A stretch of 64,000 nt of DNA. Source: Ostrea edulis (lineage: Eukaryota). The translations under genes and the position numbers were made by a program. The first letter of the stretch is position 1. Each line of letters opens with the position of its first letter. This document shows, one piece after another, positions 7,950 through 48,209 of the stretch. The notes beneath the pieces were generated by a model. It was not told the origin of the DNA, made no database searches, and saw only the letters and a program-made list of their open reading frames with translations. The stretch is taken from assembly GCF_947568905.1 (NCBI RefSeq), contig NC_079172.1, forward strand, positions 22,878,001 through 22,942,000, given 5' to 3'.

Positions 7950-8395
7950 CGTGGTTAGTAGGTAAAACCCCCAAGGTCAAGAGATTAAAAACTTTGGTAC
8001 CCAAAGAAGTCTTGCCATAAGGAATACACGTAAAATATGAAAACCTTAGACTAACCATTCAAAGTTAAAGTTTTCCAGAATTAGGTAACCATCAGGTAAA
8101 GTTAATGAGGGAAGAAAAAAAACATGGTTAGTAGGTAAAACCCCAAGGTCAAGAGATCAAAAACTTTGGTAGCCAATCTGATTAAAATCAGCTCCTCGAT
8201 CCGCTCCTTTATTTCTTTTGATTTGCCGCTACTCGAAGAAATAAAGGAGCGGATCGAGGAGCTGATTTTAATCAGATTATTTGGTAGCCAAAGAAGTCTT
8301 GCCATAAGGAATACACGTAAAATATGAAAACCTTAGCATTAACCATTCAAATTATAAGTTTTCCAAAATTAGGTAACCACAAGGTAAAGGTAATG
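7950..8395. repeat. Tandemly duplicated approx. 165-bp interspersed-repeat fragment (second copy interrupted by a fold-back)
   Basis: tggttagtaggtaaaaccccaaggtcaagag...aaagaagtcttgccataaggaatacacgtaaaatatgaaaacc occurs twice. Confidence 0.75.
8175..8279. mobile_element. 105-bp fold-back mini-element with 10-bp target duplication (MULE-like MITE, inferred)
   Basis: Perfect 43-bp arms 8175-8217 and 8236-8278, 18-nt loop; tttggtagcc at 8165-8174 and 8280-8289; the upstream duplicate unit shows the empty site. Confidence 0.75.
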
Positions 8396-8436: not shown

Positions 8437-8988
8437 CGAGTTATCATATATTTACACATATGAAATACGGTTTCCCTTATTGTGGCAAAACCCGACACCC
8501 CGGGGGCCATGATTTGAACAAACTTGAATTTGAACTATGTCAGGAAACTTCGATGTAAATTTGAACTCTTCTGGCTCAATGGTTCTTGAGAAGATTTTTC
8601 CTATATAAATACATATAAAATGTGGTTTCCCCTAGTGTGGCCCCACCCGACCCCCAGGGGCAATGATATGAACAAACTGGAATCTGCATTATGTCAGGAA
8701 GCTTCCATGTAAAGTTGAACTCTTCTGGCTCAATGGTTCTTGAGAAAAATTTTCCTATATACACACATATAAAATATGGTTTCCCCATGTGTGGCCCCAC
8801 CCGACCCCCAGGGGCCATGATATGAACTGGAATCTGCATTATGTAAGGAAGCTTCCATGTAAAGTTGAACTCTTCTGGCTTAATGGTTCTTGAGAAGATT
8901 TTAAAAGATTTTTCCTATATATAAATACATATAAAATATGGTTTCCCCTATTGTGGCGCCATCCGACCCCTGGGGGACATGATATGAA
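8406..8988 (-). mobile_element. Non-autonomous Helentron-type element with oyster approx. 166-bp (Cg170/HindIII-like) satellite array, 3' part (left of the Polinton)
   Basis: End aacaagaggcccatgggccacatcgctcacc, then about 3.5 tandem approx. 160-bp units (tggttcttgagaagattttt...gatatgaacaaactggaatc) resembling the known oyster satellite family (recognised from memory). Confidence 0.75.
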
Positions 8989-9333
8989 AGTAGTATAACG
9001 CGTCCCGATAGGGAGTTCAACTGAGTGCACTTTTTATGCAAATGAGGTCAAGTAAGGGCGTTTTTGATTGGTCAAGCGGTGTTGGGGTCAACGGAGTGCA
9101 CTAGGACGGGGTCAACCCCAGCAGGGGTTGTAGAGCGGGTGAATAGACTGGGCTATGGCCGCTGGTCTATGATGCGGTACTTTCGCTTTGAGTTCCTGGA
9201 ATGAGTTCCTGCTATTTTTCTGAAAATCCAGTGAAATCCTGTGTATTAAATCTAAAAGAATAACAGTGTATTAAATCTAAAAGAATAACACAAGGTTTTA
9301 AGTTGACATGTTTATTAAAGAACAATAGTACAA
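8989..9333 (+). repeat. Left terminal inverted repeat (345 bp)
   Basis: 8989-9146 is the exact reverse complement of 29226-29383; the inner part matches with patches of divergence; contains a 2 x 25-bp tandem at 9241-9290. Confidence 0.95.
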
Positions 9334-9432
9334 TCCCCAGAGGTGGCACGGTCCCTAGTTTTACCCAGCGCTGTCTACAGGTAATATATATATAAAGCGG
9401 CGCGCGGTGCATTGGGTGTCACTTTCGACATC

Positions 9433-12400
9433 ATGTCAGACAAGTTACCTACTGGACTTCCACGGAGTTATATTGAACAGCGATTGAGATTTTTGAATGA
9501 TCAGCTGAACAGACAACGGCAGCGTGAATTACAACTTCGCAGAGAGAATCAACGACGACTACAGTATTTACAGCGGGGAGGGGGGAAAAAGAAACTCATT
9601 TCGGATTATTACAAAATTCAACTGGAACGAGGACGTCAATCACGGAAATTTAAAGTCAAGGAAAATGTCTACAATGTTGCTTTCAAACCTATTCCAGAGA
9701 AAGAAAATACAACCTTCATTCGTCGGCTCTTCCGGGATATGTTAAAAAATGTGAAACAGGAAATGCAGTGCAATCCCAATGATTATCTACGTTTAAATAT
9801 TCGGCACCCGTCTCTGGATTCAGCTATTTGGTACGAATTTACGCAGTCCAATCAGCTCAACGAGGACAAAATTCTGAACAAAATAGAATCCGTCCAGCAA
9901 TCTAAAAAGGAATTCCTAATCACCGACGGGGCAGTGCAGATGGATTTTTTCCATGTTAAATATCCACAAGGCAGCGGGTGCACTAAGAAAAAACATCTAC
10001 ACATGGATAAGGAGAAATTCAAAAACTCCAAGAGAGCGATCGTTCGCATTCAAAATCCTGAGGATTCTCTCTGCTTGTCCCGGGCTATTGTGGTAGCACG
10101 TCTACACAGCCAGAAATCAAACGACCCGGCATGGGAAACGAAATGGTTACGCATGAGAAAAGGGGATTTCAAAACGCTCGACCAGAAACGAGAAGCGATA
10201 GCCTTGATGGAACAAGCTGGGTGTGTTATGAACCACCCGTGTGGGCCGCGTGAATGGGAGCAATTACAGCACGCGCTCGCCCCACAGTATCGATTGAAAA
10301 TATTTCAATTCAAAACGAATACAACTCGTTTACGACTGGAACCTATTTACAAAGGACCGGGGTACGGGACTTGTTTGAATATCCTGCTGGATAACGAGCA
10401 TTACGATGCCATTGTGTCTATGGCTGGAGTGACGGAAAACGGATACTATTGCGATTATTGCGATGTTGGTTACAGTCACATTGAAGATCATCGGACCGTC
10501 TGTCCTCATCGATGCTCATTTTGTTTAGCCGATACCCCCTGTACCCCGGACGGGACTCAGACGAATTGCCCTCATTGTAAGGGATTTTTCAGAAATGCAG
10601 CTTGTTACCAGACCCACTTGAAACCTTACAGCAGTAATACAACAACCACGGTCTGCAGTTTAATGGGGCGGTGTAACCAGTGTCAGAAATGGATGTCCAA
10701 GCAATTATTAAAACGCCACGCGTGTGGGGGTCAAACCGAATGCCGCATCTGTCACAAAGTCGTCACCATGCCTCATCACTGCTTTGTACAGACGAAACCC
10801 AAACCTAAGAAAGAAAAAGAAGAAGAAGAGGAGTTGAAAATATACATTTATTACGATTTCGAATGCAGTCAGGAAAACGGTATTCACATCCCCAATTTAT
10901 GCGTGGCAGAACGTGTGTGTCAACATTGCGACAGTGTGGATATCGACAAGCCCTGTTCTCATTGTGAAGGATTCGGATCACAACGCCGCTTCCTATTTCA
11001 AGGCCCCGACACGTTAAAACAGTTTATGGAATGGCTCTTACAGAGCGAGACCGATGAGCAAGGCCATGTGGAACTCAAACACGATGAAGCCACCATCATT
11101 GCCCACAATTTCAAAGGATACGATGGGCAGTTTATTTTGAATTACCTGGTGCACACGGCGTGTATCAAACCCACCGTCATCCTGAACGGGAGTAAAATCT
11201 TATCCATGCAAGTCTTGGGGTTGAGATTCATCGATTCTTACAACTTTCTACCCTTTGCTCTTGCCAAGATGCCCTCTGCTTTCGGATTAACGGAATTGAA
11301 AAAAGGCTATTTCCCGCACTTTTTCAACACGACAGAGAACCAGCAGTATGTGGGTCCTTACCCGGCCGCTCATTTCTACAATCCTGACGATATGTCCACC
11401 GCCAATCGTGAAGCCTTCTATACTTGGTACCATCAACAAGAGGGCAAAGTCTTTGATTTCCAGAAAGAATTCTTAGCTTACTGCATCTCGGACGTGGATA
11501 TTTTACGCCGCTGTTGTGCCCATTTCAAATCCACCCTGTTTGATCTGGTGGAAGTAGACCCCTTTCAAGAATCCATCACGTTTGCCAGCACGGCTAATTT
11601 AGCCTACCGACGAGGATTCATGACACAGGACACCATCGCCATCATTCCTAATATGGGCTACCGGCCAGCACGACGATATTCAGCTAAAGCTTGCCGATGG
11701 CTCGCCTGGTTAGAACATCAACATCACTGCATACGACATGCTAGAAATGGGGGTGAAGTCACGCTTGGACCCTATACAGTAGATGGGTATGATGAGGAAT
11801 CCCGTATCGTGTACGAATTCTATGGCTGTTACTGGCACGGCTGTCCCACCTGTTACCCGAATCTGTTGACTGACATGCATCCTCATCGTGTTCAGCATAC
11901 GTATCAAGACCTCTACCTGGACACCTTAAAACGAGCCAGTGCTTTAGAAGACCAAGGCTATACAGTCGTGAGCATATGGGAACACGAGTTTGATCGTCAG
12001 ACCCAGACCAATGCCGACTTACAGGAATTTTTACAAGGAGTCGATATACAAGATCCTTTGAATCCCCGTGACGCTTTGTACGGAGGCCGGACCAATGCTA
12101 CACGACTGTATTGTGAGGAGGGTGACATGCGATACGTGGATGTCTGTTCCCTGTACCCGTACGTGTTGAAATACAAGCCATTTCCCGTCGACCATCCCCA
12201 AGTCATCACCAGCCATTTCACCGATGTCAGAGACTATTTCGGGCTCATTCGTTGTCGTGTCCTCCCACCCCGAGAGCTGTATCACCCCGTATTACCTTAC
12301 AAGACCGGGGGCAAATTACTCTTTCCCTTATGCCGCACCTGTGCGGAACAGCGCAACTTAGGACCCGACGAGCGGTGCCAGCACACCGATTCTGAACGCA

Positions 12401-20521: not shown

Positions 20522-21925
20522 ATGATGCACCGAGAATCTTGCGCTTGTGGCACCAGCAGTTTAGAACTGTTTAAAGTGCCCCCGACCAACGTCACTTTAG
20601 AAGATTCGAAATGGATGGAATATTACCCCATTTCCAGTACCCTCAACTCGGATACGGCTCCGATTGAATTTGAAATCAAAGGACAAGGAGATGAATATCT
20701 GGATTTATCCCAAACTTATCTCCAGATGGTATGTAAATTCACGAAAGCCAATGGAACGAATCTCGCAGGAGGCAATTCGACCTCCACCCCCGTGAATAAC
20801 ATTCTCCATTCCTTGTTCAGTGAAATCGATGTCAGTCTCAATGGAAAAGTCATTACCCCGGGGACGGATACTTATCCCTACAAAGCGTATCTGGAGAAAT
20901 TGTTGTCTTATGCACCCAAGACTCTGGAAACCCAGATGAGAGCCTGTAGCTTGTGGGAAAAAGATACGGCAGGACATATGGATGAGGTCAAATTAGAAGC
21001 TCTGGCTCAAACTCCTGTGGAATTTGCAGTAGTGTCTAACAAAGTCAACATCGCGGCCGTCATCCCGACTCCCGAGTATCCGGATGATTCCAAGAATGTA
21101 GGGTTGAGAAAACGTCACGAGAAGATTACAGACAGTAAGGAGATCGTGTTGATGGATCGATTACATCTGGATTTGTTTGAGCAAGAGAAATGTCTCCCTA
21201 ATGGCTTGGATGTCCGTCTCCGATTCAATCGCGCTCGACCCCAGTTCTACATGATGACCGCTGCCGGGAGTAGTGGGAAAGTGGCCATTCAAAGTATGAT
21301 CTTGTGGGTGAGGAAAGTCAAACCTGTGCCGAGTATCATTAATCTCATCAATCAGCAACTGAGTACTCAAACGGCGAAATATCCATTGAGACGAGTGGAA
21401 GTGAAAACCTTCACCATTCCTAGTGGCACCCAATCTAAAATCACCGATCATCTGTTTCAAGGACAGATGCCTAAACTGATCGTGTTGGGCTTTGTGGACA
21501 ATGCGGCTTTTAATGGGGATAATACCAGAAACCCCTTTCATTTCCAAAATGAGAGAGTCAAGAAATTAGAAATCAGTATCAATGGAGAAATGATGGAAAC
21601 CCGACCTTTGGAACCTAATTTCACCGACGATCAGTACCTGAGATCGTATTTGAGTCTGTACAAAGGCTTGGGAAAATTAGGTCAGGACTGGGCTCCGGAC
21701 ATTACCCTAGAAGAGTATAAAAACGGTTACACCCTCTGGTGTGTGGATTTCACGAAAGATCAAGAAGCCCAGACGGATAAATTTCATCTCATACAGACGG
21801 GGAACTTGAGAGTGGAAGTGCAATTTGCCGCCAACGTAGCCAGGACCTTAAACTGTGTGGTGTATGCCGTGTTCGACAATCTGCTAGAAATCAACAAACA
21901 ACGAGAAGTCAGCATCGATTACTAA
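20522..21925 (+). CDS. Major capsid protein (double jelly-roll, hexon-like)
   Basis: [10 protein letters not shown]...EYYP...[21 protein letters not shown] and [12 protein letters not shown] motifs of the Polinton MCP; 467 aa. Confidence 0.93.
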
Positions 21926-21932
21926 GAGAGAG

Positions 21933-22430
21933 ATGGATACTCAGCAATTGAGAGATGTTTTACAACGAGATTTAGGACCGGCGTTTGCCGGTGTGTATCC
22001 TCGAGATGTCATACCTGAGCTGTTACCTCATCACAAAGCCATCGTGGTGAATACAGACCCTCACGATCGCCCTGGAGCGCATTGGGTCTGTTTGTATTTG
22101 AGTAGCCCTACCGTCGAATATTTTGATTCTTACGGATTACCCCCCAGCCATAAAGACATCCAAGACTTTATTCAACGCCACGGAGAGACTTGGATTCATA
22201 ACACCCATTGTTATCAAGATTTGAATACGGATGTCTGTGGACAATACTGTGTGTATTTTTTACATCAACGCCATCGCCATAGAAGCACCGTACGAGAATG
22301 GTTACTTCCCTGGAAAGGCACGGCCTTACAACGCGATCGTTTTGTGGCGGATTGGTTTAAAGAGACCTTCCGAAAACCGAGAACCCATCAAGGACAAACT
22401 TGTCAATGTCAAAGACTGAATGTATTGTAA
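21933..22430 (+). CDS. Maturation cysteine protease (adenain/Ulp1-like)
   Basis: VNTD...GAHW, EYFDSYG, YQDLNTDVCGQYC give H, D, Q and C catalytic residues. Confidence 0.94.
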   Translation: MDTQQLRDVLQRDLGPAFAGVYPRDVIPELLPHHKAIVVNTDPHDRPGAHWVCLYLSSPTVEYFDSYGLPPSHKDIQDFIQRHGETWIHNTHCYQDLNTDVCGQYCVYFLHQRHRHRSTVREWLLPWKGTALQRDRFVADWFKETFRKPRTHQGQTCQCQRLNVL

Positions 22431-22515
22431 ACTATGTTATTGTTATTGTTTATAGTTGGAGTTTAATAAAACGTTGGAAAAAAAAAAAAAATTCTTGTCA
22501 TTGTAATCAACCATG

Positions 22516-22556
22516 TCTTTTCAAAAAGAATGGGTAGCCCTGAAAAGGGCTGTTTT
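22516..22556 (-). terminator. Histone-mRNA-type 3' stem-loop plus downstream element (copy 1)
   Basis: Minus strand AAAAC AGCCCTTTTCAGGGCT ACCCA TTCTTTTT GAAAAGA; stem-loop 22536-22551, downstream of ORF 22644-22940. Confidence 0.8.
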
Positions 22557-22643
22557 CTTTCTCTCTCTCTGTTCTTGGTCTTTTCTCTTCTTCTTCTCTC
22601 TTCTCCTTCTTCTCCTTCTCTTCTTCTTTTCTTCTCGGTCCCC

Positions 22644-22940
22644 TCACTGTCTGTTCTTCTTCTTCTTTCTTCTCTTCTTTTTCTGCTCCTCCGGGGGTTG
22701 CTCGTGGTCAAACACAAACACAGGCAACCACCCGTGTTTAAAAAACAATCTCCCCGGAGGCCGTTGCACCACTTCTAACTCTGCGTCCCAGTTTTCTTCT
22801 GGCGGGGGCAGATCCTGGCTCATGGGCGGTGGGGGAAGAGCCTCCCGTGAGGCCGGCGGGGTAATCTCTGCCTCCCAATCCTCCTCCCATTTGATACAAT
22901 AATCATTCACTGTAGGGTCTGGTCCTACTCTACGGCTCAT
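22644..22940 (-). CDS. Hypothetical 98-aa protein: acidic/Pro-rich with basic NLS-like tail
   Basis: EEDWEAEI and EENWDAEL repeats, LPPPP, KKKRRKKKK; has a dedicated upstream promoter and 3' stem-loop. Confidence 0.6.
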   Translation of the reverse strand: MSRRVGPDPTVNDYCIKWEEDWEAEITPPASREALPPPPMSQDLPPPEENWDAELEVVQRPPGRLFFKHGWLPVFVFDHEQPPEEQKKKRRKKKKNRQ

Positions 22941-22984
22941 GGTTCTGGTTCCTTTAAAAAATCGGAATGCCCGATTTTTGACGT

Positions 22985-23033
22985 TGCGCTCGGTTTAAAA
23001 AGGCGAGAGCGCGGACGTCCTCGAAAACATCCC
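22985..23033 (-). promoter_or_regulatory. Duplicated H4/HiNF-P-like promoter element, copy 1
   Basis: Minus strand GGGATGTTTTCGAGGACGTCCGCGCT...TTTAAACCGAGCGCA; 25/26 identical to 25044-25069. Confidence 0.65.
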
Positions 23034-23047
23034 CTACCTCAGATGGC

Positions 23048-23089
23048 TGACGTCATGTTGATGACTCATCAAAAAACACTATATAAATA
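23048..23089 (+). promoter_or_regulatory. CRE + AP-1 + TATA promoter
   Basis: TGACGTCA 23048-23055, TGACTCA 23062-23068, TATATAAATA 23080-23089, ATG at 23117. Confidence 0.7.
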
Positions 23090-23116
23090 GGTCACTTGTT
23101 ACCATTTTTCTCAATC

Positions 23117-23518
23117 ATGTCGTTTGAACGGTACGCGGATGATGAAAATGATGTACTAGTGTGTGGGTATTGCCGAGGACCTTGGAGCACTTGTGGGTGT
23201 TTTCATTATAAAAAAGAAAACATCCTGGCCAAACAGAAGTGGATAGAGAGATTGGCAGAGCTGACGTTTTATCCCTTTGTCTATAAATGTTGTGGTCACA
23301 CTAGAGAACCCTGGCTAGAGTGTAAGTGTCCGCAGCATTGTACCATCACCCCTGAAGAAGAAATAGCGCATAAGGACTGTACCTGTGAGATCTGTCAGGA
23401 GTTTAGAGAGCGCTGGACTCAGAGAAAGTTTGATCCCCGGGTGTTTCAACATTGTCCTTACAGTCAAGAACCCCGGTCAACGTGTACCTGTGAGACCTGT
23501 CAACCAGCATGTCGGTGA
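23117..23518 (+). CDS. Cys-rich putative zinc-binding protein (133 aa)
   Basis: Three copies of C-x-[YH]-x-[RQ]-[GE]-P-[WR]-x-x-C-x-C plus two CTCExC motifs. Confidence 0.7.
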   Translation: MSFERYADDENDVLVCGYCRGPWSTCGCFHYKKENILAKQKWIERLAELTFYPFVYKCCGHTREPWLECKCPQHCTITPEEEIAHKDCTCEICQEFRERWTQRKFDPRVFQHCPYSQEPRSTCTCETCQPACR

Positions 23519-24006
23519 CGGATCTACGAGGAGATGTATTATCTCTACCTTGGGTGGATGCTATTGTACAACAATGTAACTGTTTAACGGTGAAACCTCA
23601 TGGATTAAGTCAACGTATTGCCGAACGATTTCCTTGGGCTAATCTGTATGCGACCCGACAACCTTTAGGACGGAGAAATTTAGCTATAGCAGCGGATCGA
23701 GGAATACCGGGTACTGTGTGTATTATGCCTCATTCTACTCATCCTGATGTGATCTGTTTGTTAGCGCAATGGGATTACGGGAGAGGCACTCAACGCTTAC
23801 CCCTGTATGCCGATACCCCCGAACAACGTGAACTTTGGTTTCAACAATGTTTACAGGAATTAGGCACTTTGTCTTACCAGACTTTAGCGTTTCCTTATCG
23901 TATTGGATGTGGATTAGCCGGAGGCAATTGGACTCATTATAGACAATGGATTTGTGACTTTGCTTATCAGTATCATAAACATGTGTACATTGTCAAGAAA
24001 ATGTAA
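23509..24006 (+). CDS. Macrodomain (ADP-ribose binding/hydrolase; Poa1p/TARG1/DarG-like class)
   Basis: GDVL...AIVQQCNC...GLSQRIAERFP...PGTV...LLAQWDYG...LAFPYRIGCGLAGGNW. Confidence 0.9.
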   Translation: MSVTDLRGDVLSLPWVDAIVQQCNCLTVKPHGLSQRIAERFPWANLYATRQPLGRRNLAIAADRGIPGTVCIMPHSTHPDVICLLAQWDYGRGTQRLPLYADTPEQRELWFQQCLQELGTLSYQTLAFPYRIGCGLAGGNWTHYRQWICDFAYQYHKHVYIVKKM

Positions 24007-24098
24007 CTTTATTATAGCTTTATTCTAGCTATTACTTGTGTTAATAAAACTTTTTTAAAACAAACTTGTGTGTTTCTTGATTTTTGCCATAAAAAGTG

Positions 24099-24139
24099 TC
24101 TTTTCAAAAAAGTTGGTGGCCCTGAAAAGGGCCGTTTGG
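24099..24139 (-). terminator. Histone-mRNA-type 3' stem-loop plus downstream element (copy 2, perfect consensus)
   Basis: Minus strand CCAAAC GGCCCTTTTCAGGGCC ACCAA CTTTTTT GAAAAGA; stem-loop 24118-24133, 23 nt after the TGA of ORF 24157-24948. Confidence 0.9.
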
Positions 24140-24156: not shown

Positions 24157-24948
24157 TCATTCCCTGCTTCCGGTAAACCGGCATAACGGGCACCGTCCCC
24201 GGGTGTGTCGCCGCTCCTGTAACTCTTCCACGCACGAGCAGCAAGCTGGGCGCTGCCCACATCCCCTGCACGTAATTCCAGAGTGTACCCTGTCTTGCCA
24301 GCAGACAGGACACTTAAACCAGATGGGAACCGCCCTATCTGCCCAGCCAGGGACAGTCATAGGGTGGTTCCTCGGGGGATGAGTTGCCACCGGTGCGTGG
24401 GTTGGTCTCGGTGGTGGTGGAGTCCTCCCTGCAAACCGGATGGTAGGTGGTGGGGGTCTTGCAGGGGCTGCTGGTCTCGGTGGTGATGCTGTGTCTGCCA
24501 CCAACAGCGACGGACTCTGGGCTGGACTGGGAGGTGGTGCGGGGGACGGTGACCGCGGTGAATACTCCACCGGTGACGCTGGTGAGTCGCTCATCGGCAC
24601 CGGGCTGTATTCCACTGGTGCCGATGGGATCGCTGGTGGTGGTGTTGTAGGCGTCGCCGGTGAGTAAGGTGGTGGTGGTGAGGGTGGCTGTGGGGCCCGT
24701 CGGCGCGGTCTCGTACCCGTGGAGATTCGAGCGGTGCGGCGGCGGGGTGCCCTCCCTTCATACTCGGCCCGCACCCGGCAGATGATCTCACGGACCCCAC
24801 TCTGGTCGAAAGGGGAGAAGGTGCTCAGGTCGTTCTCAGAACGCACGACCCAATTCTCCCCTACCCGTTCCTCAGCCACCACTACCAGCCGGTACCGGAA
24901 TCCAGGCAAGGTCTGAAAATTGTAGAGCGGGTCTCTTCTTGTAGCCAT
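24157..24948 (-). CDS. Pro/Ser-rich protein with C-terminal RING-like finger (263 aa)
   Basis: CPVC-x10-CRGCGQRPACCSC-x13-CPLC; PPPPY; YSPATPT, YSPVPMS, YSPRSPS; first ATG 24948. Confidence 0.8.
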   Translation of the reverse strand: MATRRDPLYNFQTLPGFRYRLVVVAEERVGENWVVRSENDLSTFSPFDQSGVREIICRVRAEYEGRAPRRRTARISTGTRPRRRAPQPPSPPPPYSPATPTTPPPAIPSAPVEYSPVPMSDSPASPVEYSPRSPSPAPPPSPAQSPSLLVADTASPPRPAAPARPPPPTIRFAGRTPPPPRPTHAPVATHPPRNHPMTVPGWADRAVPIWFKCPVCWQDRVHSGITCRGCGQRPACCSCVEELQERRHTRGRCPLCRFTGSRE

Positions 24949-25022: not shown

Positions 25023-25069
25023 TGCGCCGGTATATATCGGGAAAGCGCGGACCTCCTCGAAAACATCCC
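25023..25069 (-). promoter_or_regulatory. Duplicated H4/HiNF-P-like promoter element, copy 2
   Basis: Minus strand GGGATGTTTTCGAGGAGGTCCGCGCTTTCCCGATATATACCGGCGCA, with TCACT Inr-like motif 29 nt after the TATA. Confidence 0.7.
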
Positions 25070-25503: not shown

Positions 25504-25722
25504 TCAAATACATAACTCCCACACACAACACCAATTCACATGTCTTTTTAAAATAGGGTCCAACATTTTTTCCATTTCTCGAATCCTGCGTTGAAATCGA
25601 TATCGATCAGCGGCTACAGTCATCCAGATACTTGTCCGGTCTTCTTCGGGTAACAGATGCACTTCATTTTGATCCAGATTAAAAGTCACACGTTTAACTT
25701 GACGTACATCTCTCGAAGACAT
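25504..25722 (-). CDS. PPP1R15/GADD34-like (ICP34.5/DP71L-type) PP1-recruiting protein, 72 aa
   Basis: KRVTF (RVxF) then EVHLL...W...AADRYRFQRRIREMEKMLDPIL, matching the GADD34/DP71L W...ARDRxRFxRRI...L signature; ATG 25722. Confidence 0.88.
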   Translation of the reverse strand: MSSRDVRQVKRVTFNLDQNEVHLLPEEDRTSIWMTVAADRYRFQRRIREMEKMLDPILKRHVNWCCVWELCI

Positions 25723-25991
25723 CGTAGTCTGATTTTCTCGATTTCTGCTCTGTCTGTGAGTCGAATTCGTTTCAATTCCTGGCCCATTAAATGAATCAGT
25801 ACTAAGGCTTGCGGGGTGATCCGGTTCTCGATCAAATACTGACAGAGACATGGATAGTCCTTTAAGCTGATGGGAAATAATTCTTCTCGCATATAGTGTA
25901 ACACAAATTCAAACTGCCCAGAATGAATGTCTGTGAGATAATCCAATACATAAACTATCGCTTTCTCTGTGATGTGGTCACTGCTGGCCAT
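25686..25991 (-). CDS. Helical paralogue 4 of tandem array (101 aa)
   Basis: MASSD start and FPISLKDY...LVLIHLMGQELK...IEKI...CLREMY, shared with its neighbours. Confidence 0.8.
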   Translation of the reverse strand: MASSDHITEKAIVYVLDYLTDIHSGQFEFVLHYMREELFPISLKDYPCLCQYLIENRITPQALVLIHLMGQELKRIRLTDRAEIEKIRLRCLREMYVKLNV

Positions 25992-26325
25992 CCTCCGGGA
26001 ATAAATGAAATGAATTAAGTTCTTCACACTTTATGTATACTTCTCGAAGCCAGTCCTTGGTGATACTTTCAATCTCGGCGGTTTTTTCAGGCATGCGTTT
26101 CTTGAATTCCTCCCCCGCGACATAAATTAACATCAACCCCGCATCGTTATAGAGATTGATGTACACATGGTTCCGTAGATCTGTATATTCGTCCAGAGTC
26201 ATTGGAAACACCCCCGCTATCAGATAATTTTTAACAGCTTGAAACACCGTATCGTCTTGCATTTTCTCCACCCATTCTAATGCATGGTTATGCGCTTTTT
26301 CTGCGATGTTGTCACTGCTGGCCAT
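25978..26325 (-). CDS. Helical paralogue 3 of tandem array (115 aa)
   Basis: MASSD...FPMTLDEY...GLMLIYVAGEEFKKRMPE...IESI...WLREVY. Confidence 0.8.
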   Translation of the reverse strand: MASSDNIAEKAHNHALEWVEKMQDDTVFQAVKNYLIAGVFPMTLDEYTDLRNHVYINLYNDAGLMLIYVAGEEFKKRMPEKTAEIESITKDWLREVYIKCEELNSFHLFPEDGQQ

Positions 26326-26353
26326 CCTCCAGGAATAAAGGAAAAGAAAACGG

Positions 26354-26707
26354 TTAGGTTTTTTTATACACCTTTTCCAGCCAGTGATCGGTAATCGCTA
26401 CAATCGCCCCAGTCTTCTCAGGTTCCCGTCGTCTAAATTCTTGGTCCATGTTATAAATCATGATCAATCCAGACTCTCTGTTCAGGTTGTCGGCTATATG
26501 CTTGCAAACGCTGGAATATTCATATAAGGTCATAGGAAATTCCCAAAAGATCAACAACTTCATGGCGAATTTATATCTCAACGGCTGTTTTTCTTTCCAG
26601 TCCTTGATACACTGTAATGCAGCGCTACGAGCGTTGTTCACCGATTCTTTGTAGTCCTCGAAATGCTGTAATACAGCGGTAAGAACGTTGTTGGTCAATT
26701 CAGCCAT
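26354..26707 (-). CDS. Helical paralogue 2 of tandem array (117 aa)
   Basis: FPMTLYEY...IADNL...GLIMIY...EFRRREPE...WLEKVY; first ATG 26707. Confidence 0.8.
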   Translation of the reverse strand: MAELTNNVLTAVLQHFEDYKESVNNARSAALQCIKDWKEKQPLRYKFAMKLLIFWEFPMTLYEYSSVCKHIADNLNRESGLIMIYNMDQEFRRREPEKTGAIVAITDHWLEKVYKKT

Positions 26708-26744
26708 GATGATCAAAATGAAAAAATTCTAAAACGTTCTTGTT

Positions 26745-27077
26745 TTATAACAGGGCAGCCATTCCTTTCATACGAATCAGTTCCACGAATCCTTTTTGTA
26801 GACAATCGCGTAAGATCCGATCAATGTCACTCATCTGGTCTGGAAGATTCTGTTTCAATTCCTCAGCATACAAATAAATCATGAGTAAACGTCCCGTATT
26901 GGTATTCTCCGCTAATGAATCAGCAATCCGTTGAAAACTATGTACATTTCTGACCTCCGGTGACATCTGTTGTACAAATTGACGAGCATTTTGAATGTGA
27001 GGATTATGTAAGGCCACGTTCATACATTGTAGTACATAACTATATCCATTTATTCTCGTAGTAGCACTGCCCCCCAT
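26745..27077 (-). CDS. Helical paralogue 1 of tandem array (110 aa), possible Bcl-2-fold protein
   Basis: SFQRIADSLAENTNTGRLLMIYLYAEEL resembles BH1 (FxxVxxELFxDGxNWGRIVxxxxF); TATAAATA on the minus strand at 27107-27114. Confidence 0.65.
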   Translation of the reverse strand: MGGSATTRINGYSYVLQCMNVALHNPHIQNARQFVQQMSPEVRNVHSFQRIADSLAENTNTGRLLMIYLYAEELKQNLPDQMSDIDRILRDCLQKGFVELIRMKGMAALL

Positions 27078-27128
27078 AGTAAATAACGAACGTTCAGAAA
27101 ACACCTGTATTTATAGGTAAAGGTTATG

Positions 27129-27216: not shown

Positions 27217-27723
27217 ATGGATACACGGAGAATTTTAAGAGCGAGACGCCGCGGCCAGGGAATACAACCAGTGGAGAATTTAACCATAGTAGAAGATTAT
27301 GTAGACGAGATGGAGATCTGGGCCAATTTAGTACAGAGATGTCGCCATCGATTACGCTGGGGCCGATCTAAAAATTGGTGTTTTGACTATGTATTGCGGT
27401 CACATGAAACAGTGGAGGATATTTACCTGCGTTTAAGTGACATGTACCTGAAAAATTCCCCCCTCATACAGTACATGATTTACCAGTTTTACACGTTATT
27501 GAACGGCACTCAAAAAGTATCGGGATTTATTCGACTGGAGAAACCACGTTACCGGAGAAGTGTATGGGTATTGTTTTGGGATGCACACTGGATGTGGGAA
27601 ACCGTCGAAGAGATACGTTTCCCCGGGAGAAGAGCTCGACAATTAGTACAACACATTATATCCGAAGATCATGACTTACACGTGTATATAGAAGAACCTG
27701 CGTATGAAGCCGGCCATTTTTAA
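27217..27723 (+). CDS. Hypothetical 168-aa protein resembling a catalytically dead CRESS-virus HUH Rep endonuclease domain
   Basis: SKNWCFDY (motif I-like), YMIYQ...GTQKVSGFIRL (motif II-like, no His), DAHW; no motif III Tyr. Confidence 0.55.
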   Translation: MDTRRILRARRRGQGIQPVENLTIVEDYVDEMEIWANLVQRCRHRLRWGRSKNWCFDYVLRSHETVEDIYLRLSDMYLKNSPLIQYMIYQFYTLLNGTQKVSGFIRLEKPRYRRSVWVLFWDAHWMWETVEEIRFPGRRARQLVQHIISEDHDLHVYIEEPAYEAGHF

Positions 27724-27742: not shown

Positions 27743-27758
27743 AGCCCTTTTTAGGGCT
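27743..27758 (+). terminator. Variant histone-type stem-loop (copy 3)
   Basis: AC AGCCCTTTTTAGGGCT AC, 19 nt after the stop of ORF 27217-27723; no clear purine-rich downstream element. Confidence 0.55.
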
Positions 27759-28043: not shown

Positions 28044-28961
28044 ATGGCTCAGAAACAACTAGAATTTGTGGACAAAGCTCAGAAGAAAATAGATCAGCTG
28101 GTACAGAAGGAGATGGGGCCACAAAAAGACTACATTGAACTGAAGAAAGCTAAGAGTGACGATCAGAAGACTGAACTGGGGAAGACCTCGAACTTCTTGC
28201 TCACGTCTCCAGACTACGTTGCTCAAAGAAGAAGAGAAGAGAAGAAGATGGCCCAGACCTCGAACCAGACCACGAGCTTCAATCTCACGCCTTCAGACCA
28301 CGTTGCTCGACAAGTGAAGATGGCCCAGACCTCGGATTACCTCCCTAGCCAGAATCCGACAGACCCGGGATTAGGCTTCTATTTTCCCGATTCACAGGAC
28401 GCTACGGGACTGGAGATGGGCTTATACGATAAACCCCCCTTCGGCGGAGAAGATTCCCCCATGAGCAGGACCGATTTCGCCATCATTACCACGACACTCG
28501 ACGGGATCGTTAACCGCATTAATGTGCTGAGTAATGAGATTGGAAATCATACCACAATCCTACTGAAGAAGCTGGAAGACCTGACTTCTAAAAAACCTAG
28601 GAAGGAATACACTCCAGATTACACTGCTAACCCGTGCTACACGTGTGGAGAAACAGGACATTGGTCGCCGGATTGCCCACAGAAAACAGATTATCCGCAG
28701 ACCAGTAAGAAATCGTGGTCGGCAGATTCTCAACAGACCAGCAAGAAAACCAAACAAAAGGATCCTTGCTTCAAATGCGGAAAAATAGGACACTGGATTA
28801 GTGAGTGTCCAGAAGAACAAGCGGAGATAGATGCGATGATTGGACCCGTACCTGGCTCAAAACCCCCTGTGAAGAGAGAATACACACCGTTAGAGATGTG
28901 GAATCCACCCGCACCTACTGAAGAACGGCCAAAAAAGAAGAAGAAACTCAGCAGAAAGTAA
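28044..28961 (+). CDS. Coiled-coil plus double CCHC zinc-knuckle protein with C-terminal NLS (305 aa)
   Basis: CYTCGETGHWSPDC and CFKCGKIGHWISEC; RPKKKKKLSRK; TATA 27985, Inr 28013, AATAAA 29052. Confidence 0.85.
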   Translation: MAQKQLEFVDKAQKKIDQLVQKEMGPQKDYIELKKAKSDDQKTELGKTSNFLLTSPDYVAQRRREEKKMAQTSNQTTSFNLTPSDHVARQVKMAQTSDYLPSQNPTDPGLGFYFPDSQDATGLEMGLYDKPPFGGEDSPMSRTDFAIITTTLDGIVNRINVLSNEIGNHTTILLKKLEDLTSKKPRKEYTPDYTANPCYTCGETGHWSPDCPQKTDYPQTSKKSWSADSQQTSKKTKQKDPCFKCGKIGHWISECPEEQAEIDAMIGPVPGSKPPVKREYTPLEMWNPPAPTEERPKKKKKLSRK

Positions 28962-29034: not shown

Positions 29035-29383
29035 TTGTACCATTGTTCTTTAATAAACATGTCAACTTAAAACCTTGTGTTATTCTTTTAGATTTAATAC
29101 ACTGTTATTCTTTTAGATTTAATACACAGGATTTCACTGGATTTTATACCGATTTTCAGAAAAATAGCTTTTCCAGGAACTCAAAGCGAAAGTACCGCAT
29201 GCTAAAATTAGGACCATAGGCCAGCCTATTCACCCGCTCTACAACCCCTGCTGGGGTTGACCCCGTCCTAGTGCACTCCGTTGACCCCAACACCGCTTGA
29301 CCAATCAAAAACGCCCTTACTTGACCTCATTTGCATAAAAAGTGCACTCAGTTGAACTCCCTATCGGGACGCGTTATACTACT
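29035..29383 (-). repeat. Right terminal inverted repeat (349 bp)
   Basis: Reverse complement of 8989-9333. Confidence 0.95.
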
Positions 29384-29810
29384 TATGAACAAACTTGAAT
29401 CTCCATTATGTCAGCAAACTTCCACGTAAATTTCAACTATACTGGTACAGTGGTTCATGAGATTTTATTAAATGACCCCACCCTATTTTTACACTTTTGT
29501 GATTATCTCCCATTTGAAGAGAACCTGGCCCTTAATTTGAACAATTTTGAATTCCCTTCAACTAAGGATGATTTGCATTAAGTTTGAATGAAATTGGCTT
29601 ACTGGTTCTGGAGAAGATTTTTAAAAATTTTCAGTGTATTTTTACCGATTTGCTATTATCTCCCCTTGGATAAGAGGGTTGGCCCTCATTTGAACAATTT
29701 TGAATCCCCTTCACCCAAGGATGATTTGTGCCAACATTGGTTAAAATTGGCCCTATGGTTTTGGAGAAGTTGAAAATGTAAATGTTTAACAGACAGACGA
29801 CGGACAAAAA

Positions 29811-30975: not shown

Positions 30976-32665
30976 TTACAGAATGATACATTTTGCACCC
31001 ATGCTAGTGTGAGCAGATGTATTCAGACTGTCATTTAATGACAAGGTGGATTTCTCTTTTCCTTTGCTTTTCAGTTTTTTGATTTTACTCTCCTTTTTGC
31101 TCTTTCCTTTCGGAACAATGTCTTTGTTCACCATGTCTGGCCGGACCCTTCCTGGAGTACTTTTTCTTTCTGCTAATTTACCACTATGCTGCACAGGAGA
31201 GCTCAATTCAGGGGGGACAACTTGGACTGTTTTGTGAGAAACTTTGTCCACATTTTCCTGAGTGACAGTTTCCACTTTGGTCTCTTCATTTCCAGAATCT
31301 CCATTAGGTAGAGTAAGCTTGACCAGCTTCACCTGAGGCATCTCATCTGCTGTTGTCATAGTTTTAGATGACTTTATCCCTTTAGGGGTCTTCATGGGAG
31401 TTTTGAATTCCATGGAATCATCAAGAGAAATATTTTCAACTGCCACATCACCAGTTCCCTTCATTTTGGCTGGAGTTTTCCTGTAGGCTTGTCTGGATTT
31501 TCTGGTGGACGTTTCGGACACTGCCTGGGTCACTTTGACCTTCTTTACTTGTGGGGTCTCAGAGGTGAGGTCCATCCTCCGCTTCACGCCTGTAAAACTC
31601 AGACTGTCATCCTCTTTGTTCTCGTTTACTTCAGGTGAAAATGTCACATTTGTTTCCTCAGAAGCAGATTTTGTTAACTTCACCTCCGTTTTAGTGTTAG
31701 CTTCTAACTGTTCCATCTCTATCTTCTTTGTACTTCTTTTGCTTTTAGCTGATGACCTTAGTCTTCTGGAAGCAGACTGGACTGGTGTTGTCTTCTTTGT
31801 ACTAGCTGTATCCTTCGGTGTACTGGGCTTGACATCATTCATTGACTTTGAAACTCGAACTGGAGTCTTCCTGGAACTACGCTGTGATCTTTTTGCAGAT
31901 TCTGGTTGTGCATCCTCTGATGTACTGGACACTGGGCGGGCAGGGGTTTTCCTGGAACTACGCTGTGATCTTTTTGCAGATTCTGGCTGTGAATCCTCTG
32001 ATGTGCTGGACACTGGACGGGCAGGGGTTTTAAAAACACCTTCTACTGGTTCTGGCATGCTCTTTCCTTTGGCTGATTCAGCAGTAGAGCGTCTCGGGGT
32101 CTTTATTGTTTTTTTGGCTGGTGAAGGTGAAGCTACTTTTTCAGATCTTTTGGCAATAGGTTGGACTGATTTTCTCCTAGTGACGGATCCTTCACTAGAC
32201 TGGGAGGATGGCACTTCTAAATTTGTTATCTGCTTGGAAGTTCTAACTGGAGATTTTGGACAAACTGACCTACGGGCAGCTGGCGCCTTTCGTTGAACTG
32301 CACTCTCTTTTTTTTCACTGACCCTTGTAACTCTCTTGGCTTGACCAGTTTTAGAAGCCTTTAGGGGCTGGGAACAAGCTTCCTGGAGAGTTTGACCTTT
32401 CTGGTACACCGATGACCTTCTGGTACGTGTCTTCACACCAGGAGGTGAGAGCACCTTGGCTGGACCTTTCTTCGGCTTTTCCTGTGGAGTAACAGCTATA
32501 GTTAGCCTTATTCCTCCTTTCCTACTATTGACATTGAATATGGATGACCGTCGGGATCGAGTGCCTATTGGGGAGGACCTCACAGGCTCTGGGAGTTTGA
32601 ACATGGTGTGTCTTCTGAAGTTGGTGGCTTTCTGGGATATTGTTCCCGTTGGCATAACTGATTTC
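30976..32665 (-). CDS. Large exon of an unidentified Lys/Ser/Thr-rich disordered protein (3' structure uncertain)
   Basis: Acceptor tgtag at 32666, phase-compatible with the upstream exon; long open frame with a 27-aa tandem KTPARPVSSTSED[SA]QPESAKRSQRSSR x2. Confidence 0.7.
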
Positions 32666-34985
32666 CTACAATAAGCAATGAATATCGGTAAAACTCTACA
32701 TCCCCCAGAAATTCCAAACTTCTCCAGCATCATTCTGATTATTAGATGTTACATGAAATTTCCAATGGTTCTTGCAAAGCAGGGCCTGAAACTAACTTTT
32801 TATGTCACCAGTCCAGTCAGACTGATAGGGTATAATTTCAACCAGTCTGCAGAAAAATCTACCCTTTTCAAGAAATAATTAAACAATATTTCGTTAATGT
32901 TATTGAAAAAAAAAAAAGGAATTTAACTCGAAATATCTCAGAAAATATTGTATTACACATGTGACATATATATTTAGTAATCGGGTTCTTATATCTACAG
33001 AGAATGCCAAATGTGTGTTCAAGATTTGACAAGTGGGTTTTCCAAAATAATGTGTTACAAAATTGACTAGTCCCATCAGACTGACTAAAACAAATGTCAA
33101 TCAGTCTGTCAGACTTTTAACCAGTCACAGACTGATGGGCAAATGTTAGTTTCAAGCCCTACAAAGGTTATATTCAAACAATATTCTACAAACAATATGT
33201 GCTTGTGAAAATAATGAAACATTAACACTCCCACAGCAACACCAGTTATCTGTAGAATGGAGGTCAAAGTACACATTTCCAAATAATTTTCAATGTTGCT
33301 ACCATCCTACAATCTAAAATGAACTCCTGGTTAACTTAAGAGTAAGGAGTACCAATATATCAATTGATAAAAAGTGCTATTTAACTGTCCAGTAAACATG
33401 GTTAAATCTGATGTAGCCAGGGCACCTAATACAAGACAAAGTTTGATTAGATACAATGATTTAAAATGGGATTGATGTACATAAATGTAACTGTAATAAT
33501 GGTTGTATATAAAAATGTAAGATTATGACTCCTAAGAAAAGCAATATATTATAATGGCAAGGTCAAAACCTTAGGTACCAAATGAAAAGTCTTGTCATGA
33601 GGAATGCACATATGAAAATATCAGTCAAGGGTCATGTTATTTTCAAAAATAACTCAAATGAGGATTTTTTTTGGGGGTCATGATGAGTTACTTCTCTTTG
33701 CTCTCAACTGCTCCTGTCCTTCACCAATATTAGTCTTTCCTTCATTAATAACTGATTTACTCAAACAGGTTATCCTTAGTTATTTTGTTTACATTATTTA
33801 GTCAATCCCCCTCACTTCACACCACATATTTTCACTGGTGGAATAAGACAAAAACAAATGGTGGTTTTTTTAAAGCTTGCTTAATCCAGGAAAATTATTC
33901 AAAGTCTTCAGAAAAGTGTGAAAAATTGTTCCATTGTTGATAAAATTCCACCTCAAAATGTAAATTAACACCCCAAAGAGCAAGTAGTAATTTAAATTTT
34001 TGGGTGGAATGGGCTACAGTCTTTTGATGCAAATGTTTATTGGAGTCTGTATATCTTTTTTGTTCTTACATCTGGAATCCCAGAATGCAATATACATTGC
34101 CAGGAAATACAAAAGATCAAAGATTTCAGATGAAATCAATGACACTGTAAGATAGAACAATAACGATTAAATGTTATTTTTGAAATATATATGTGTGTGT
34201 TTCAAATAACTTATGTGTGTTATTTTTTAAATAACATGACTGTCTGTTATGCCTCTGATTGATCACTCACGATTCCAAAGTTATAAGCAAGGATAAAAGT
34301 TTCTGACAGACAGGACAACAATTATATATGCCCTCCAATCTTTAATACAGGTGCATAAAAATAAAGTAAAATCATTGTTGATTTTACCAATGGAAAATTC
34401 TAATAAGTGAAATCTATTCCAGTATAAATATTGTGTTGCATCTGGAAAAAATTGTTCAATACACAGCTCTATATTGCTTGTTCATCTATACACAGCTTAC
34501 CTTTCTTTCCCAACATTTATAACAGGAGAATGTTCTTGCTCAAAAACCATCTGCCTCCCCGACACCCAGCCTGGAGTTATCGGGCTGTAAAACTTTGCAG
34601 GGGACAACCTGTTATAAAATGGGGATATAGATATATATTATCATAAAATTCAGATTTTAATACCCAATACCAACGTTTTTCTGATATTAGCTCGCTCACT
34701 TGAGTGTTTGAAAAGTGTGTAGCCTTGAATCTCAGAGGTAAAATGAACATTCTAAGCTTAATTGCTATAATAATTACTGTAATACATGTAGATGTTGAAG
34801 AATTTACCCATATTGTATTAAAATATCAATATGGGATTGCCTGAACCCCTATATCCCTAACATTGTCATGTTGTTCTGGAGAAGGTCAATGTCACAAAGC
34901 CAAACATTATAGTATGAAATGAAATCTTGTCGTATTAATCTAAATACAAAATATGAAACCCTGATAAACAATTTCTACAACTTAC

Positions 34986-43777: not shown

Positions 43778-45344
43778 ATGAAGACAGAATCCAAAATTCT
43801 GACACCTAAAGTAAAACCACCAAGTGCTTCACCTCAGAGAAATAGCAATACACCTTCAAGTAAAAGCCCAAACAAAAGAAATTCATTGATTGTTGCCAAG
43901 TCTCCTGGGCTGAATGCTGTTGCAACACCAAAGGCCAAACCTCGGTCTCCTTCCCCAAGGAAAACACCAGCTCCTGTTATGAAGACACCTGTTGCCACTG
44001 TAACACCAACAAAATCCCCTGTTAAAAAGTTCTCCACTCCTAAGTCTCAGGTAAATTCAAGAAGTGTATCACCTAAAGCTGTGACCCCTGTTGTCTCCAC
44101 AACTCCTGCAAATAAACAGAAGACCACTCCAAAAGCTGAGAGGAAGTCCAGGAGTACCTCTCCTAAGGCTAAGACACCTAGTGCATCTCCAAAAGTCAAG
44201 ACCCCAGCGGCTTCCCGAAGCATGTCACCCAAAACTAGTATTCCAGTAGTTTCTACTTCAGCAGATGATGAAGTCTTGACAACTCCGAAATCGGGAAGGA
44301 AGTCAAGAAATACCACTCCAAAACCCAAGTCTTCAAAAAGTTCATCTCCGAAAGCTAAATCTCCCATAGCCAAATCTCCAAAAGCTAAAACACCCAGAAG
44401 TGCATCTCCAAAGGCGAAGACTCCCAGAAGTGCATCTCCACAGGCGAAGACTCCAAGAAGTGTATCGCCAAAAGTTGCTACACCTAGAGTTGCGTCTCCT
44501 ACAGCCAAGACTCCCAGGAGTGTATCTCCAAAAGTTGCTACACCTAGAGTTGCATCTCCAAAGGCCAAGACTCCCAGAAGTGTATCTCCAAAGGCCAAGA
44601 CTCCCAGGAGTGTAACTCCAAAAATTGCTACATCTAGAGTTGCATCTCCAAAGGCCAAGACTCCCAGAAGTGTATCTCCAAAGGCCAAGACTCCCAGAAG
44701 TGCATCTCCAAAGGCCAAAACACCTGTAGTGTCTACCCCTGTAAAACCAGCTGAAGAAGTTAAGAAAAGTCCTGCATTGGAAAGGACATCAAAGAGCAAA
44801 TCTCCAAAAGGCAAGACGCCTATAAGTGCATCTAAAGCTAAATCTCCCAAGGGCCAAACACCAAGAAGTGCATCTCCCAAGGCCAAAATTCCTGTCTCAC
44901 CAAGTCCTACCCAGATTGGTGGTGTGGTAACAACTCCTAAGGCTAAGACACCTGTGTCTTCTACCACTCCTGTGAAACCTGTTAAGGAACCCATGTCAAC
45001 ACCTAAGTCAGACAGACGGTCAAGAAGCACATCACCAAAAGCTATGACTCCCAATCTGTCACCAAATGTGAAGACACCTGAGGTCTTAGCAATTAAAGAG
45101 AAAATCTTGTCCACACCGAAGTCTGGCAGAAAGTCTAGAAGTGTATCTCCAAAATCAAACACAGTTGCAAACACCCCAAAATCTGCACAGAAGGCTGAAT
45201 CACCAAAGTCAAAGAGTCCATCTCCCAAGGTAAAGACACCAGCTACTCCAAAATTTACCAGTTCAGGGTTGAAGTCCAGAACACCATCCCCCAAGGCTGT
45301 TACCACAACTGAATCCCCCTTAACCAGTGGATGGACACCAGTCG
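43778..45344 (+). CDS. MKI67: Ki-67 coding exon 4 (SPK/TPK-rich, 10-aa tandem repeats)
   Basis: 1567-bp exon, phase 0 to 1, repeats SPKAKTPRS[AV]. Confidence 0.85.
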
Positions 45345-48093: not shown

Positions 48094-48209
48094 GTTTGCA
48101 GAATATTTTCTAAAATTTTATAAATAATATTGAAATTATTTACCTTAAAAATTATGACAATGTTGTAAAATACATTTGTACTATGAATATTCATACCAAT
48201 GTATTTCAG

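Follow-up and report, generated by a model that had tools for sequence, protein, structure and literature searches.

Histone-type 3' signals behind two non-histone genes of an oyster Polinton

[quoted passage not shown] U7 snRNA carries a universally conserved UCUUU box (PMC5054213). Hybrid histone genes such as H2A.X produce both hairpin and poly(A) isoforms (PMC7807067). A recent survey found no part of the histone mRNA machinery in viral genomes, and our literature searches returned no report of histone-type 3' ends in Polinton/Maverick virus-like transposons of animals, or in any other transposon or virus. Here, we analysed a 64,000-nt stretch of the Ostrea edulis genome (GCF_947568905.1, NC_079172.1, positions 22,878,001 to 22,942,000; hereafter the window), in which a complete 20.4-kb Polinton ends two non-histone accessory genes with this type of signal. 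Related oyster Polintons conserve it, suggesting that the element probably uses the histone mRNA processing pathway of its host.

The element (Table 1) has a GC content of 45% compared to 33% in its flanks. Profile searches against Pfam identified a protein-primed family B DNA polymerase (pPolB, PF03175, E 1.9e-55), a retroviral-type integrase (rve, PF00665, E 1.6e-11) with a chromodomain, and an IAP gene with BIR and RING domains, and the element also carries Bcl-2-like and PP1-binding-like genes. Of the virion module, the A32-like packaging ATPase (PF04665) scored 29.5 bits (cut-off 22.8) and the adenoviral-type protease (PF00770) 21.0 bits (cut-off 21.3), whereas the putative capsid gene is assigned only by its position and its many Polinton-linked homologs. 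The host is an oyster (Ostrea edulis-like), as the best capsid and RING hits are from O. edulis at 98%, and not a mussel, as implied by the original prediction.

Table 1. Coordinates of the Polinton, its two stem-loop genes and neighbouring features, numbered from the first nucleotide of the window.
Positions	Strand	Feature	Support
8989-29383		Complete Polinton/Maverick element	See text
about 8988-9333 and 29035-29384		Terminal inverted repeats, about 350-400 nt	95-99% complementary
8983-8988 and 29384-29389		6-bp target-site duplication	TATGAA on both sides
25044-25067	-	24-nt promoter motif of gene 1, followed by a TATA-like box, about 96 nt upstream of the ATG	Motif occurs only twice in the window, once before each stem-loop gene
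24157-24948	-	Stem-loop gene 1, RING-like zinc-finger protein (263 aa from the ATG; proline-rich middle, Cys-rich C-terminus), intronless ORF	98% identical to O. edulis models; eight invariant Cys in orthologs
24118-24133	-	Stem-loop 1, GGCCCT-TTTC-AGGGCC (6-bp stem, 4-nt loop), 23 nt after the stop	RF00032 match 24093-24138, 40.2 bits, E 2.3e-8 for the whole window; the MFE structure is exactly this hairpin
24099-24105	-	GAAAAGA, candidate downstream element of gene 1, starting 13 nt after the stem	Contains AAAGA, the complement of the U7 UCUUU box
24019-24024 and 24008-24013	-	Two AATAAA hexamers 94 and 105 nt after stem-loop 1, a possible alternative poly(A) site	
23509-24006	+	orf165, convergent with the RING-like gene; its AATAAA at 24043-24048	Conserved in related elements L001-L003; weak macrodomain-like PDB hits
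23008-23031	-	Second copy of the 24-nt promoter motif, about 68 nt upstream of the ATG of gene 2	Upstream regions of both genes align over about 150 nt
22644-22940	-	Stem-loop gene 2, 98-aa protein (acidic W-D/E-A-E motifs, basic C-terminal tail)	Orthologs in related elements L001 (73 aa, 40%) and L035 (94 aa, E 3e-4); otherwise an orphan
22536-22551	-	Stem-loop 2, AGCCCT-TTTC-AGGGCT, 92 nt after the stop	RF00032 match 22511-22556, 32.0 bits, E 2.7e-5 (3e-6 locally); compensated first stem pair A-U
22516-22522	-	GAAAAGA, candidate downstream element of gene 2, starting 14 nt after the stem	
22462-22467	-	ATTAAA overlapping the plus-strand hexamer below	
22465-22470	+	AATAAA 35 nt after the protease stop	
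21933-22430	+	Adenoviral-type protease gene, convergent with the 98-aa gene and ending in an ordinary AATAAA	Pfam C5, just below cut-off
27743-27758	+	Third, weak histone-like hairpin, 19 nt after the stop of orf168 (27217-27723)	RF00032, 22.3 bits, E 0.11

The two hairpins and downstream elements named in the original prediction are present as described, and the observation is confirmed. A scan with the Rfam Histone3 model (RF00032), which had been proposed as a check, placed stem-loop 1 above the gathering score of 34 bits and stem-loop 2 just below it, by 2 bits. The 14-nt core occurs exactly twice in the 64 kb, against 0.19 matches expected when two mismatches are allowed, and together with the Rfam E-values and shuffled controls this rules out a chance occurrence. 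The predicted AATAAA hexamers are also correct, while the ATTAAA had been placed one base off and overlaps the hexamer serving the convergent protease gene. The third hairpin, which had not been listed, was considered as a further case but set aside, as it lacks both ACCCA and GAAAAGA, is preceded by an AATAAA, and is absent from the L001 ortholog. The exact 16-nt RNA of stem-loop 1 is used as a laboratory SLBP ligand (PMC1635294, PMC10127258).

Neither upstream ORF has a histone fold. The RING label of the first gene is only weakly supported, as the window copy has no Pfam hit, the ZZ/RING hits in the PDB are marginal, and an AF2 model reached a pLDDT of only 42. Searches with the full-length protein and its C-terminus for transcript-derived contigs returned only genome models and two short metagenome contigs, and an exhaustive search with the 98-aa protein gave only two unrelated repeat proteins. 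IMG/VR contained no relative of the capsid, and three scans of this database with hairpin variants gave 0, 1, and 0 hits, the single hit being a chance match inside a long ORF of a GC-rich phage-like contig.

The same signal follows RING-like or 98-aa-like genes in twelve related elements or contigs (numbered with the prefix L) from Ostrea, Crassostrea/Magallana, Saccostrea, and unidentified samples, with capsid identities down to 52% and RING-protein identities down to 36-44%. Ten of these have RF00032 hits above the gathering score (L001, 39.5; L003, 35.5; L004, 36.2; L005, 43.2; L007, 40.6; L010, 36.6; L011, 35.5; L029, 37.6; L034, 39.0; and L035, 38.3 bits). Every hairpin lies on the strand of its gene, 20-92 nt after a stop, although gene order and orientation differ, and in L005 and L034 the cassette is located on the plus strand just before the ATPase gene. 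More distant Polintons lack the signal (Mercenaria L006 and L008/L009 at 45% capsid identity), and L036 and L037 (capsid 48%) end before the accessory region and are uninformative.

Several lines of evidence indicate that the signal is evolutionarily maintained. In 15 hairpins, 90 of 90 stem cells pair, and two pairs change only on both sides (G-C to A-U in three sequences, C-G to U-A in two), with no one-sided changes; L003 and L029 share flanks but differ by a compensated pair. The share of the commonest base is 0.51 upstream, 0.97 in the stem, 0.90 in the loop, 0.87 in the 3' flank, and 0.58 after the downstream element, against 0.45 at random, with column shares of 0.92-1.00 for the three bases before the stem and 0.83-1.00 for the first four bases after it. 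GAAAAGA lies 13-16 nt after the stem in 12 of 16 hairpins that were found without using it as a criterion, and the same architecture with a modal spacing of 14 follows true H2A, H2B, and H3 genes in environmental contigs, although complementarity to U7 rests here only on the universal UCUUU box. In the degenerate copy L002 both hairpins carry stem mismatches, and the Rfam score drops to 26.8 bits for one and to no hit for the other, but this decay argument rests on a single copy. Within the window, the other units of the element end with AATAAA 2-43 nt after the stop, while the stem-loop genes have none before 133 and 177 nt.

We consider it likely that the two genes are expression cassettes, each consisting of a private shared promoter, an intronless ORF, and a complete histone-type 3' processing signal. 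The analysis establishes that this signal is present, that it is statistically and structurally indistinguishable from those behind real histone genes, and that it is under purifying selection across a clade of oyster Polintons, whereas the action of SLBP and U7, the cleavage position, coupling to the cell cycle, and the advantage to the element are inferred from sequence alone. In the most likely mechanism, host SLBP would bind the hairpin, host U7 snRNP would pair with the downstream element, and the pre-mRNA would be cut a few bases after the stem, giving a short non-polyadenylated mRNA whose translation and stability would follow SLBP availability in S phase or in SLBP-rich oocytes and embryos. 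The L003 gene model implies an intron, which is atypical of hairpin-processed genes. A further inferred benefit follows from the geometry of this element, as both genes converge on plus-strand units, and cleavage at the hairpin would keep the convergent transcripts from overlapping, whereas use of the next poly(A) hexamers would not. The interpretation in the original prediction is thus supported in part: the elements are bona fide histone-type 3' signals on non-histone Polinton genes and no precedent was found, but S-phase-restricted or oocyte SLBP-controlled expression independent of poly(A) remains an inference, and dual hairpin/poly(A) processing is at least as likely as pure poly(A)-independence.

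The best-surviving alternative, although unlikely as the main explanation, is that the hairpin is functional but the principal product in most tissues is a polyadenylated mRNA carrying it internally, with hairpin cleavage used only in proliferating or SLBP-rich cells, as in hybrid histone genes. Same-strand AATAAA/ATTAAA hexamers follow the hairpin in 8 of the 11 loci with 300 nt of downstream sequence, at a near-constant 38-47 nt in four Crassostrea/Saccostrea-type loci (L003, L005, L007, and L029), making polyadenylated read-through isoforms likely, and about half of the true histone contigs also have hexamers within 300 nt. In contrast, L034 and L035 have no hexamer within this distance, the ATTAAA in the window is better explained as the reverse face of the protease AATAAA, and AT-rich intergenic DNA yields such hexamers by chance. 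This alternative refines the main explanation rather than excluding it. It is very unlikely that the signal is an inert relic co-captured from a host histone gene flank; although its form is identical to host-type histone signals and Polintons capture host genes, it is kept at 36-44% protein identity while the flanks are randomised, shows only compensatory changes, sits behind two unrelated genes and in different genomic slots, and carries mismatches in the one degenerate copy. Equally improbable is a role as a DNA or RNA structure for termination or insulation, or as a binding site for a factor other than SLBP without U7 cleavage, since, although both window hairpins sit between convergent units and tandem double hairpins occur in L004, L010, and L011 (only the second being followed by GAAAAGA), the strand-specific flanks and fixed spacing are conserved together with the hairpin and the cassette is co-directional with its neighbour in L005 and L034.

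It is somewhat more likely than not that a clade of oyster Polintons has evolved a dedicated cassette routing mRNAs for a RING-like protein and a small acidic protein through the host SLBP/U7 pathway. These would be the first non-histone, mobile-element or viral mRNAs made as hairpin-terminated, poly(A)-less transcripts, with expression tied to host DNA replication or to SLBP-rich germline and embryonic cells. A virus-like element keeping this signal on non-histone genes would be a natural exception, would show that the pathway can be used by other genes, and would point to a strategy for coupling the gene expression of an element to host S phase or to the germline. It would also provide a naturally evolved non-histone substrate with many sequence variants for studies of histone mRNA biology. 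For genome annotation, RF00032 hits in bivalve genomes cannot be taken as markers of histone genes.

Compared to the described systems, the element shares with other Polintons the pPolB, integrase, and packaging ATPase genes, the putative protease and capsid genes, long TIRs, and a 6-bp TSD, but carries histone-type 3' signals, which our searches found reported for no Polinton and which more distant bivalve Polintons lack. As in hybrid histone genes such as H2A.X, a hairpin signal is followed by poly(A) hexamers on the same strand, which could allow a cell-state-dependent choice of 3' end, but the predicted products are non-histone proteins and two loci lack a hexamer within 300 nt. With replication-dependent histone genes, the two cassettes share the hairpin geometry and invariant bases, the A-rich 5' and ACC(C)A 3' flanks, a purine-rich element containing AAAGA about 14 nt after the stem, the position shortly after the stop codon, and, in the window, intronless ORFs, whereas they encode non-histone proteins of a virus-like mobile element and carry their own shared promoter.

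The hairpin-bearing genes lie within a GC-rich island (about 45% against 33%) that is bounded by inverted repeats with 95-99% complementarity and flanked by the 6-bp direct repeat TATGAA. Pfam identifies a protein-primed family B polymerase, a BIR+RING IAP, an A32-like ATPase, an rve+chromodomain integrase, a marginal adenoviral-type protease, and a zinc-knuckle protein. The closest relatives of the 467-aa capsid-position gene are Ostrea edulis proteins (87-98% identity), followed by Saccostrea and Crassostrea/Magallana (about 72%) and Mercenaria (about 45%). The element is therefore a complete Polinton in the genome of an Ostrea-like oyster, not a mussel, and no interrupted core ORF was seen in this copy. 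It also carries a host-manipulation gene set, which in addition to the IAP includes a PP1 catalytic-subunit-binding (GADD34-like) ORF (PF10488, E 1.9e-5), four paralogous ORFs of about 100-117 aa, one of them with a weak Bcl-2 hit (E 0.008), and a conserved 165-aa ORF (orf165) with weak macrodomain-like PDB hits. Outside the element, a perfect 43-nt inverted repeat with an 18-nt spacer lies about 700 nt to its left and is probably a foldback or MITE, with weak miRNA-precursor-like Rfam hits on both strands. Long ORFs in locally GC-richer patches may belong to other mobile elements; the first of these has no Pfam hit.

Coordinates of features in the window and in related loci (L004, S. echinata; L010 and L011, metagenome assemblies; L035, capsid identity 52%)
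Sequence	Feature	Coordinates	Strand
Window	Inverted repeats bounding the element	about 8988-9333 and 29035-29384	
Window	Protein-primed family B polymerase	9412-13395	
Window	BIR+RING IAP	13431-13958	+
Window	A32-like ATPase	13952-14638	
Window	rve+chromodomain integrase	16676-17761	
Window	Capsid-position gene (467 aa)	20522-21925	
Window	Marginal adenoviral-type protease	21933-22430	
Window	Zinc-knuckle protein	28044-28961	
Window	Hairpin 1, behind the 263-aa RING-like gene	24118-24133	-
Window	Hairpin 2, behind the 98-aa gene	22536-22551	-
Window	Weak third hairpin, behind orf168	27743-27758	+
Window	24-nt promoter motif, two copies	23008-23031 and 25044-25067	-
Window	Regions in which the U-rich spacer can pair with GAAAAGA	22511-22535 and 24093-24117	-
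Window	Proline-rich middle of the RING-like protein	24363-24800	-
Window	Host-manipulation gene set	13431-13958, 25504-27104, 23509-24006	+, -, +
Window	Perfect inverted repeat left of the element	8175-8278	
Window	Long ORFs outside the element	30976-32733, 43778-45397, 46567-48123, 60925-62769	-, +, +, +
L004	Tandem double hairpins	12339-12405	
L010	Tandem double hairpins	1274-1318	
L011	Tandem double hairpins	1123-1166	
L035	tRNA gene	15091-15164	
L035	Palindromic hairpin between two core genes	6088-6190	

The observation behind the original prediction, that two minus-strand accessory genes end in histone-type stem-loops, is real, and the reported positions hold. Hairpin 1 begins 23 nt after the stop codon of the 263-aa RING-like gene, hairpin 2 begins 92 nt after that of the 98-aa gene, and GAAAAGA starts 13 and 14 nt after the respective stems. 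The Rfam model RF00032 (Histone3) scores the first hairpin at 40.2 bits, above the gathering score of 34, and the second at 32.0 bits, with whole-window E-values of 2.3e-8 and 2.7e-5, and both fold as predicted. In both cassettes the U-rich spacer can pair with GAAAAGA, and a second hairpin is predicted for the 3' UTR of the 98-aa gene, reminiscent of the structural rearrangement on SLBP binding described for H4-12 (PMC1635294). The RING-like protein has a long proline-rich middle with PPxY-like motifs, whose low complexity swamped the word-indexed homolog search. A third hairpin follows orf168 but was not counted, as it scores only 22.3 bits, lacks the flank and the downstream element, is preceded by an AATAAA, and is missing from the ortholog in the related O. 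edulis element L001.

To assess how widespread this feature is, we examined the DNA around capsid homologs at graded distance and around a 44%-identical RING-like homolog. Histone3 hits above the gathering score occur in L001 (O. edulis, 39.5 bits), L003 (C. virginica, 35.5), L004 (36.2), L005 (C. angulata, 43.2), L007 (S. cucullata, 40.6), L034 (C. angulata, capsid identity 57%, 39.0), L035 (38.3), L010 (36.6), L011 (35.5), and the metagenome contig L029 (37.6). In every case the hairpin is on the strand of an ORF that stops 20-92 nt upstream, and this ORF is either RING-like (L001, L003, L004, L005, L007, L010, L011, L029, L034, and the metagenome contig L019) or 98-aa-like (L001, L035). The cassette moves with the gene: in L005 and L034 it lies on the plus strand directly before the ATPase gene, in the slot filled by the IAP gene in the window, whereas in L035 it is the last plus-strand gene. 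In L035 a tRNA gene (64 bits) lies 40 nt after the hairpin and downstream element, at the right edge of the element, and may mark a tRNA-adjacent insertion or a carried tRNA; the same element contains a long palindromic hairpin with strong plant-miRNA-precursor-like hits on both strands, which is likely a nested MITE. L004, L010, and L011 have tandem double histone-type hairpins 13-35 nt apart (29-51 nt start to start), of which only the second is followed by GAAAAGA, and the first uses the A-U first-pair variant in L010 and L011. In contrast, Mercenaria (L006) and L008/L009 (capsid 45%) have no Histone3-like hit even at E-values up to 1.

Several lines of evidence indicate that the signal is under constraint. 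In an alignment of 15 hairpins all 90 stem cells are standard pairs, and two pairs vary, but only by changes on both sides, with no one-sided changes. L003 and L029 have the same flanks but differ by a compensated third pair. Across 12 cassettes, the share of the commonest base is 0.51 in the 32 nt upstream, 0.97 in both stem arms, 0.90 in the loop, 0.87 in the 3' flank, and 0.58 in the 30 nt after the downstream element, compared to a random expectation of 0.45; the value of 1.00 for GAAAAGA in this comparison arises by construction, as the motif served as the anchor. Independently, 12 of the 16 hairpins ascertained without reference to GAAAAGA have it 13-16 nt after the stem. In L002, a degenerate O. 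edulis copy in which the RING-like ORF is interrupted once and the protease ORF is shortened, both hairpins carry stem mismatches (one and two unpaired positions), and Rfam falls to 26.8 bits for one and gives no hit for the other, although this is a single example.

The two genes share both ends of their transcription unit. A 24-nt motif followed by a TATA-like box occurs exactly twice in the 64-kb window, 68 and 96 nt upstream of the two start codons. It recurs at the same places in L001 and L002, and about 150 nt of upstream sequence aligns. A related motif plus TATA box lies upstream of the stem-loop genes in L010 (4 mismatches), L035 (5), and L005 and L011 (6 each). By our estimate, about 0.7 chance hits are expected at 6 mismatches over the roughly 0.6 Mb searched, 0.08 at 5 or fewer, and 0.006 at 4 or fewer; the L010 and L035 matches are therefore significant, whereas the other two are supported mainly by their position. 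Terminal genes of the other units of the element have AATAAA soon after the stop codon (protease +35, orf165 +37, the PP1-binding-like gene +14, orf168 +2, and the zinc-knuckle gene +91), while the two stem-loop genes have no hexamer before +133 and +177. Both stem-loop genes converge on plus-strand units. We infer from the coordinates that cleavage just after the hairpins would leave about 40-50 nt between the opposing 3' ends, whereas use of the next minus-strand hexamers would make the transcripts overlap.

Taken together, the sequence data show a genuine, selectively maintained histone-type 3' module on non-histone Polinton genes, which is so far restricted to an oyster-centred clade, while its function at the RNA level, including cleavage after the hairpin and any action of SLBP or U7, is inferred. 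The interpretation originally put forward, that these mRNAs are processed like histone mRNAs and expressed independently of poly(A), is thus only partly supported. No paper in the literature searched combines the histone stem-loop or SLBP with Polinton, Maverick, or transposable element. A 2026 preprint found no histone 3'-end machinery in large DNA viruses and does not mention viral hairpins, and a report on U7 repression of HERV1/LTR12 elements links U7 to retroelements but does not concern hairpin-terminated mRNAs.

To compare the module with that of real histone genes, we performed a gene-agnostic scan of JGI metagenome contigs for the hairpin followed by ACC, 6-12 nt, and GAAAAGA, which gave 22 contigs. 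Of these, 16 have H2A, H2B, or H3 genes ending about 30-36 nt upstream, three more are partial contigs with flanks matching those histone loci, one (L030) is unresolved, and two (L019 and L029) are C. virginica-type Polinton RING-like genes. A survey of U7 (PMC5054213) reports a universally conserved UCUUU box in its histone-binding region, whose complement AAAGA lies within GAAAAGA; pairing with the host U7 is inferred from this box alone. The exact 16-nt hairpin of the RING-like gene is the wild-type SLBP competitor or ligand RNA in two papers (PMC1635294, PMC10127258), and bivalve histone mRNAs carry the typical hairpin and purine-rich elements (PMC6210712). In the histone contigs the G of GAAAAGA is 13-16 nt after the stem, most often 14, which is the same as in the Polinton cassettes. 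Same-strand poly(A) hexamers also follow the hairpin in most Polinton loci, at 38-47 nt in L003, L005, L007, and L029 and at 69-133 nt in the Ostrea copies, although L034 and L035 have none within 300 nt. This tempers the proposed independence of poly(A) and resembles hybrid histone genes such as H2A.X (PMC7807067).
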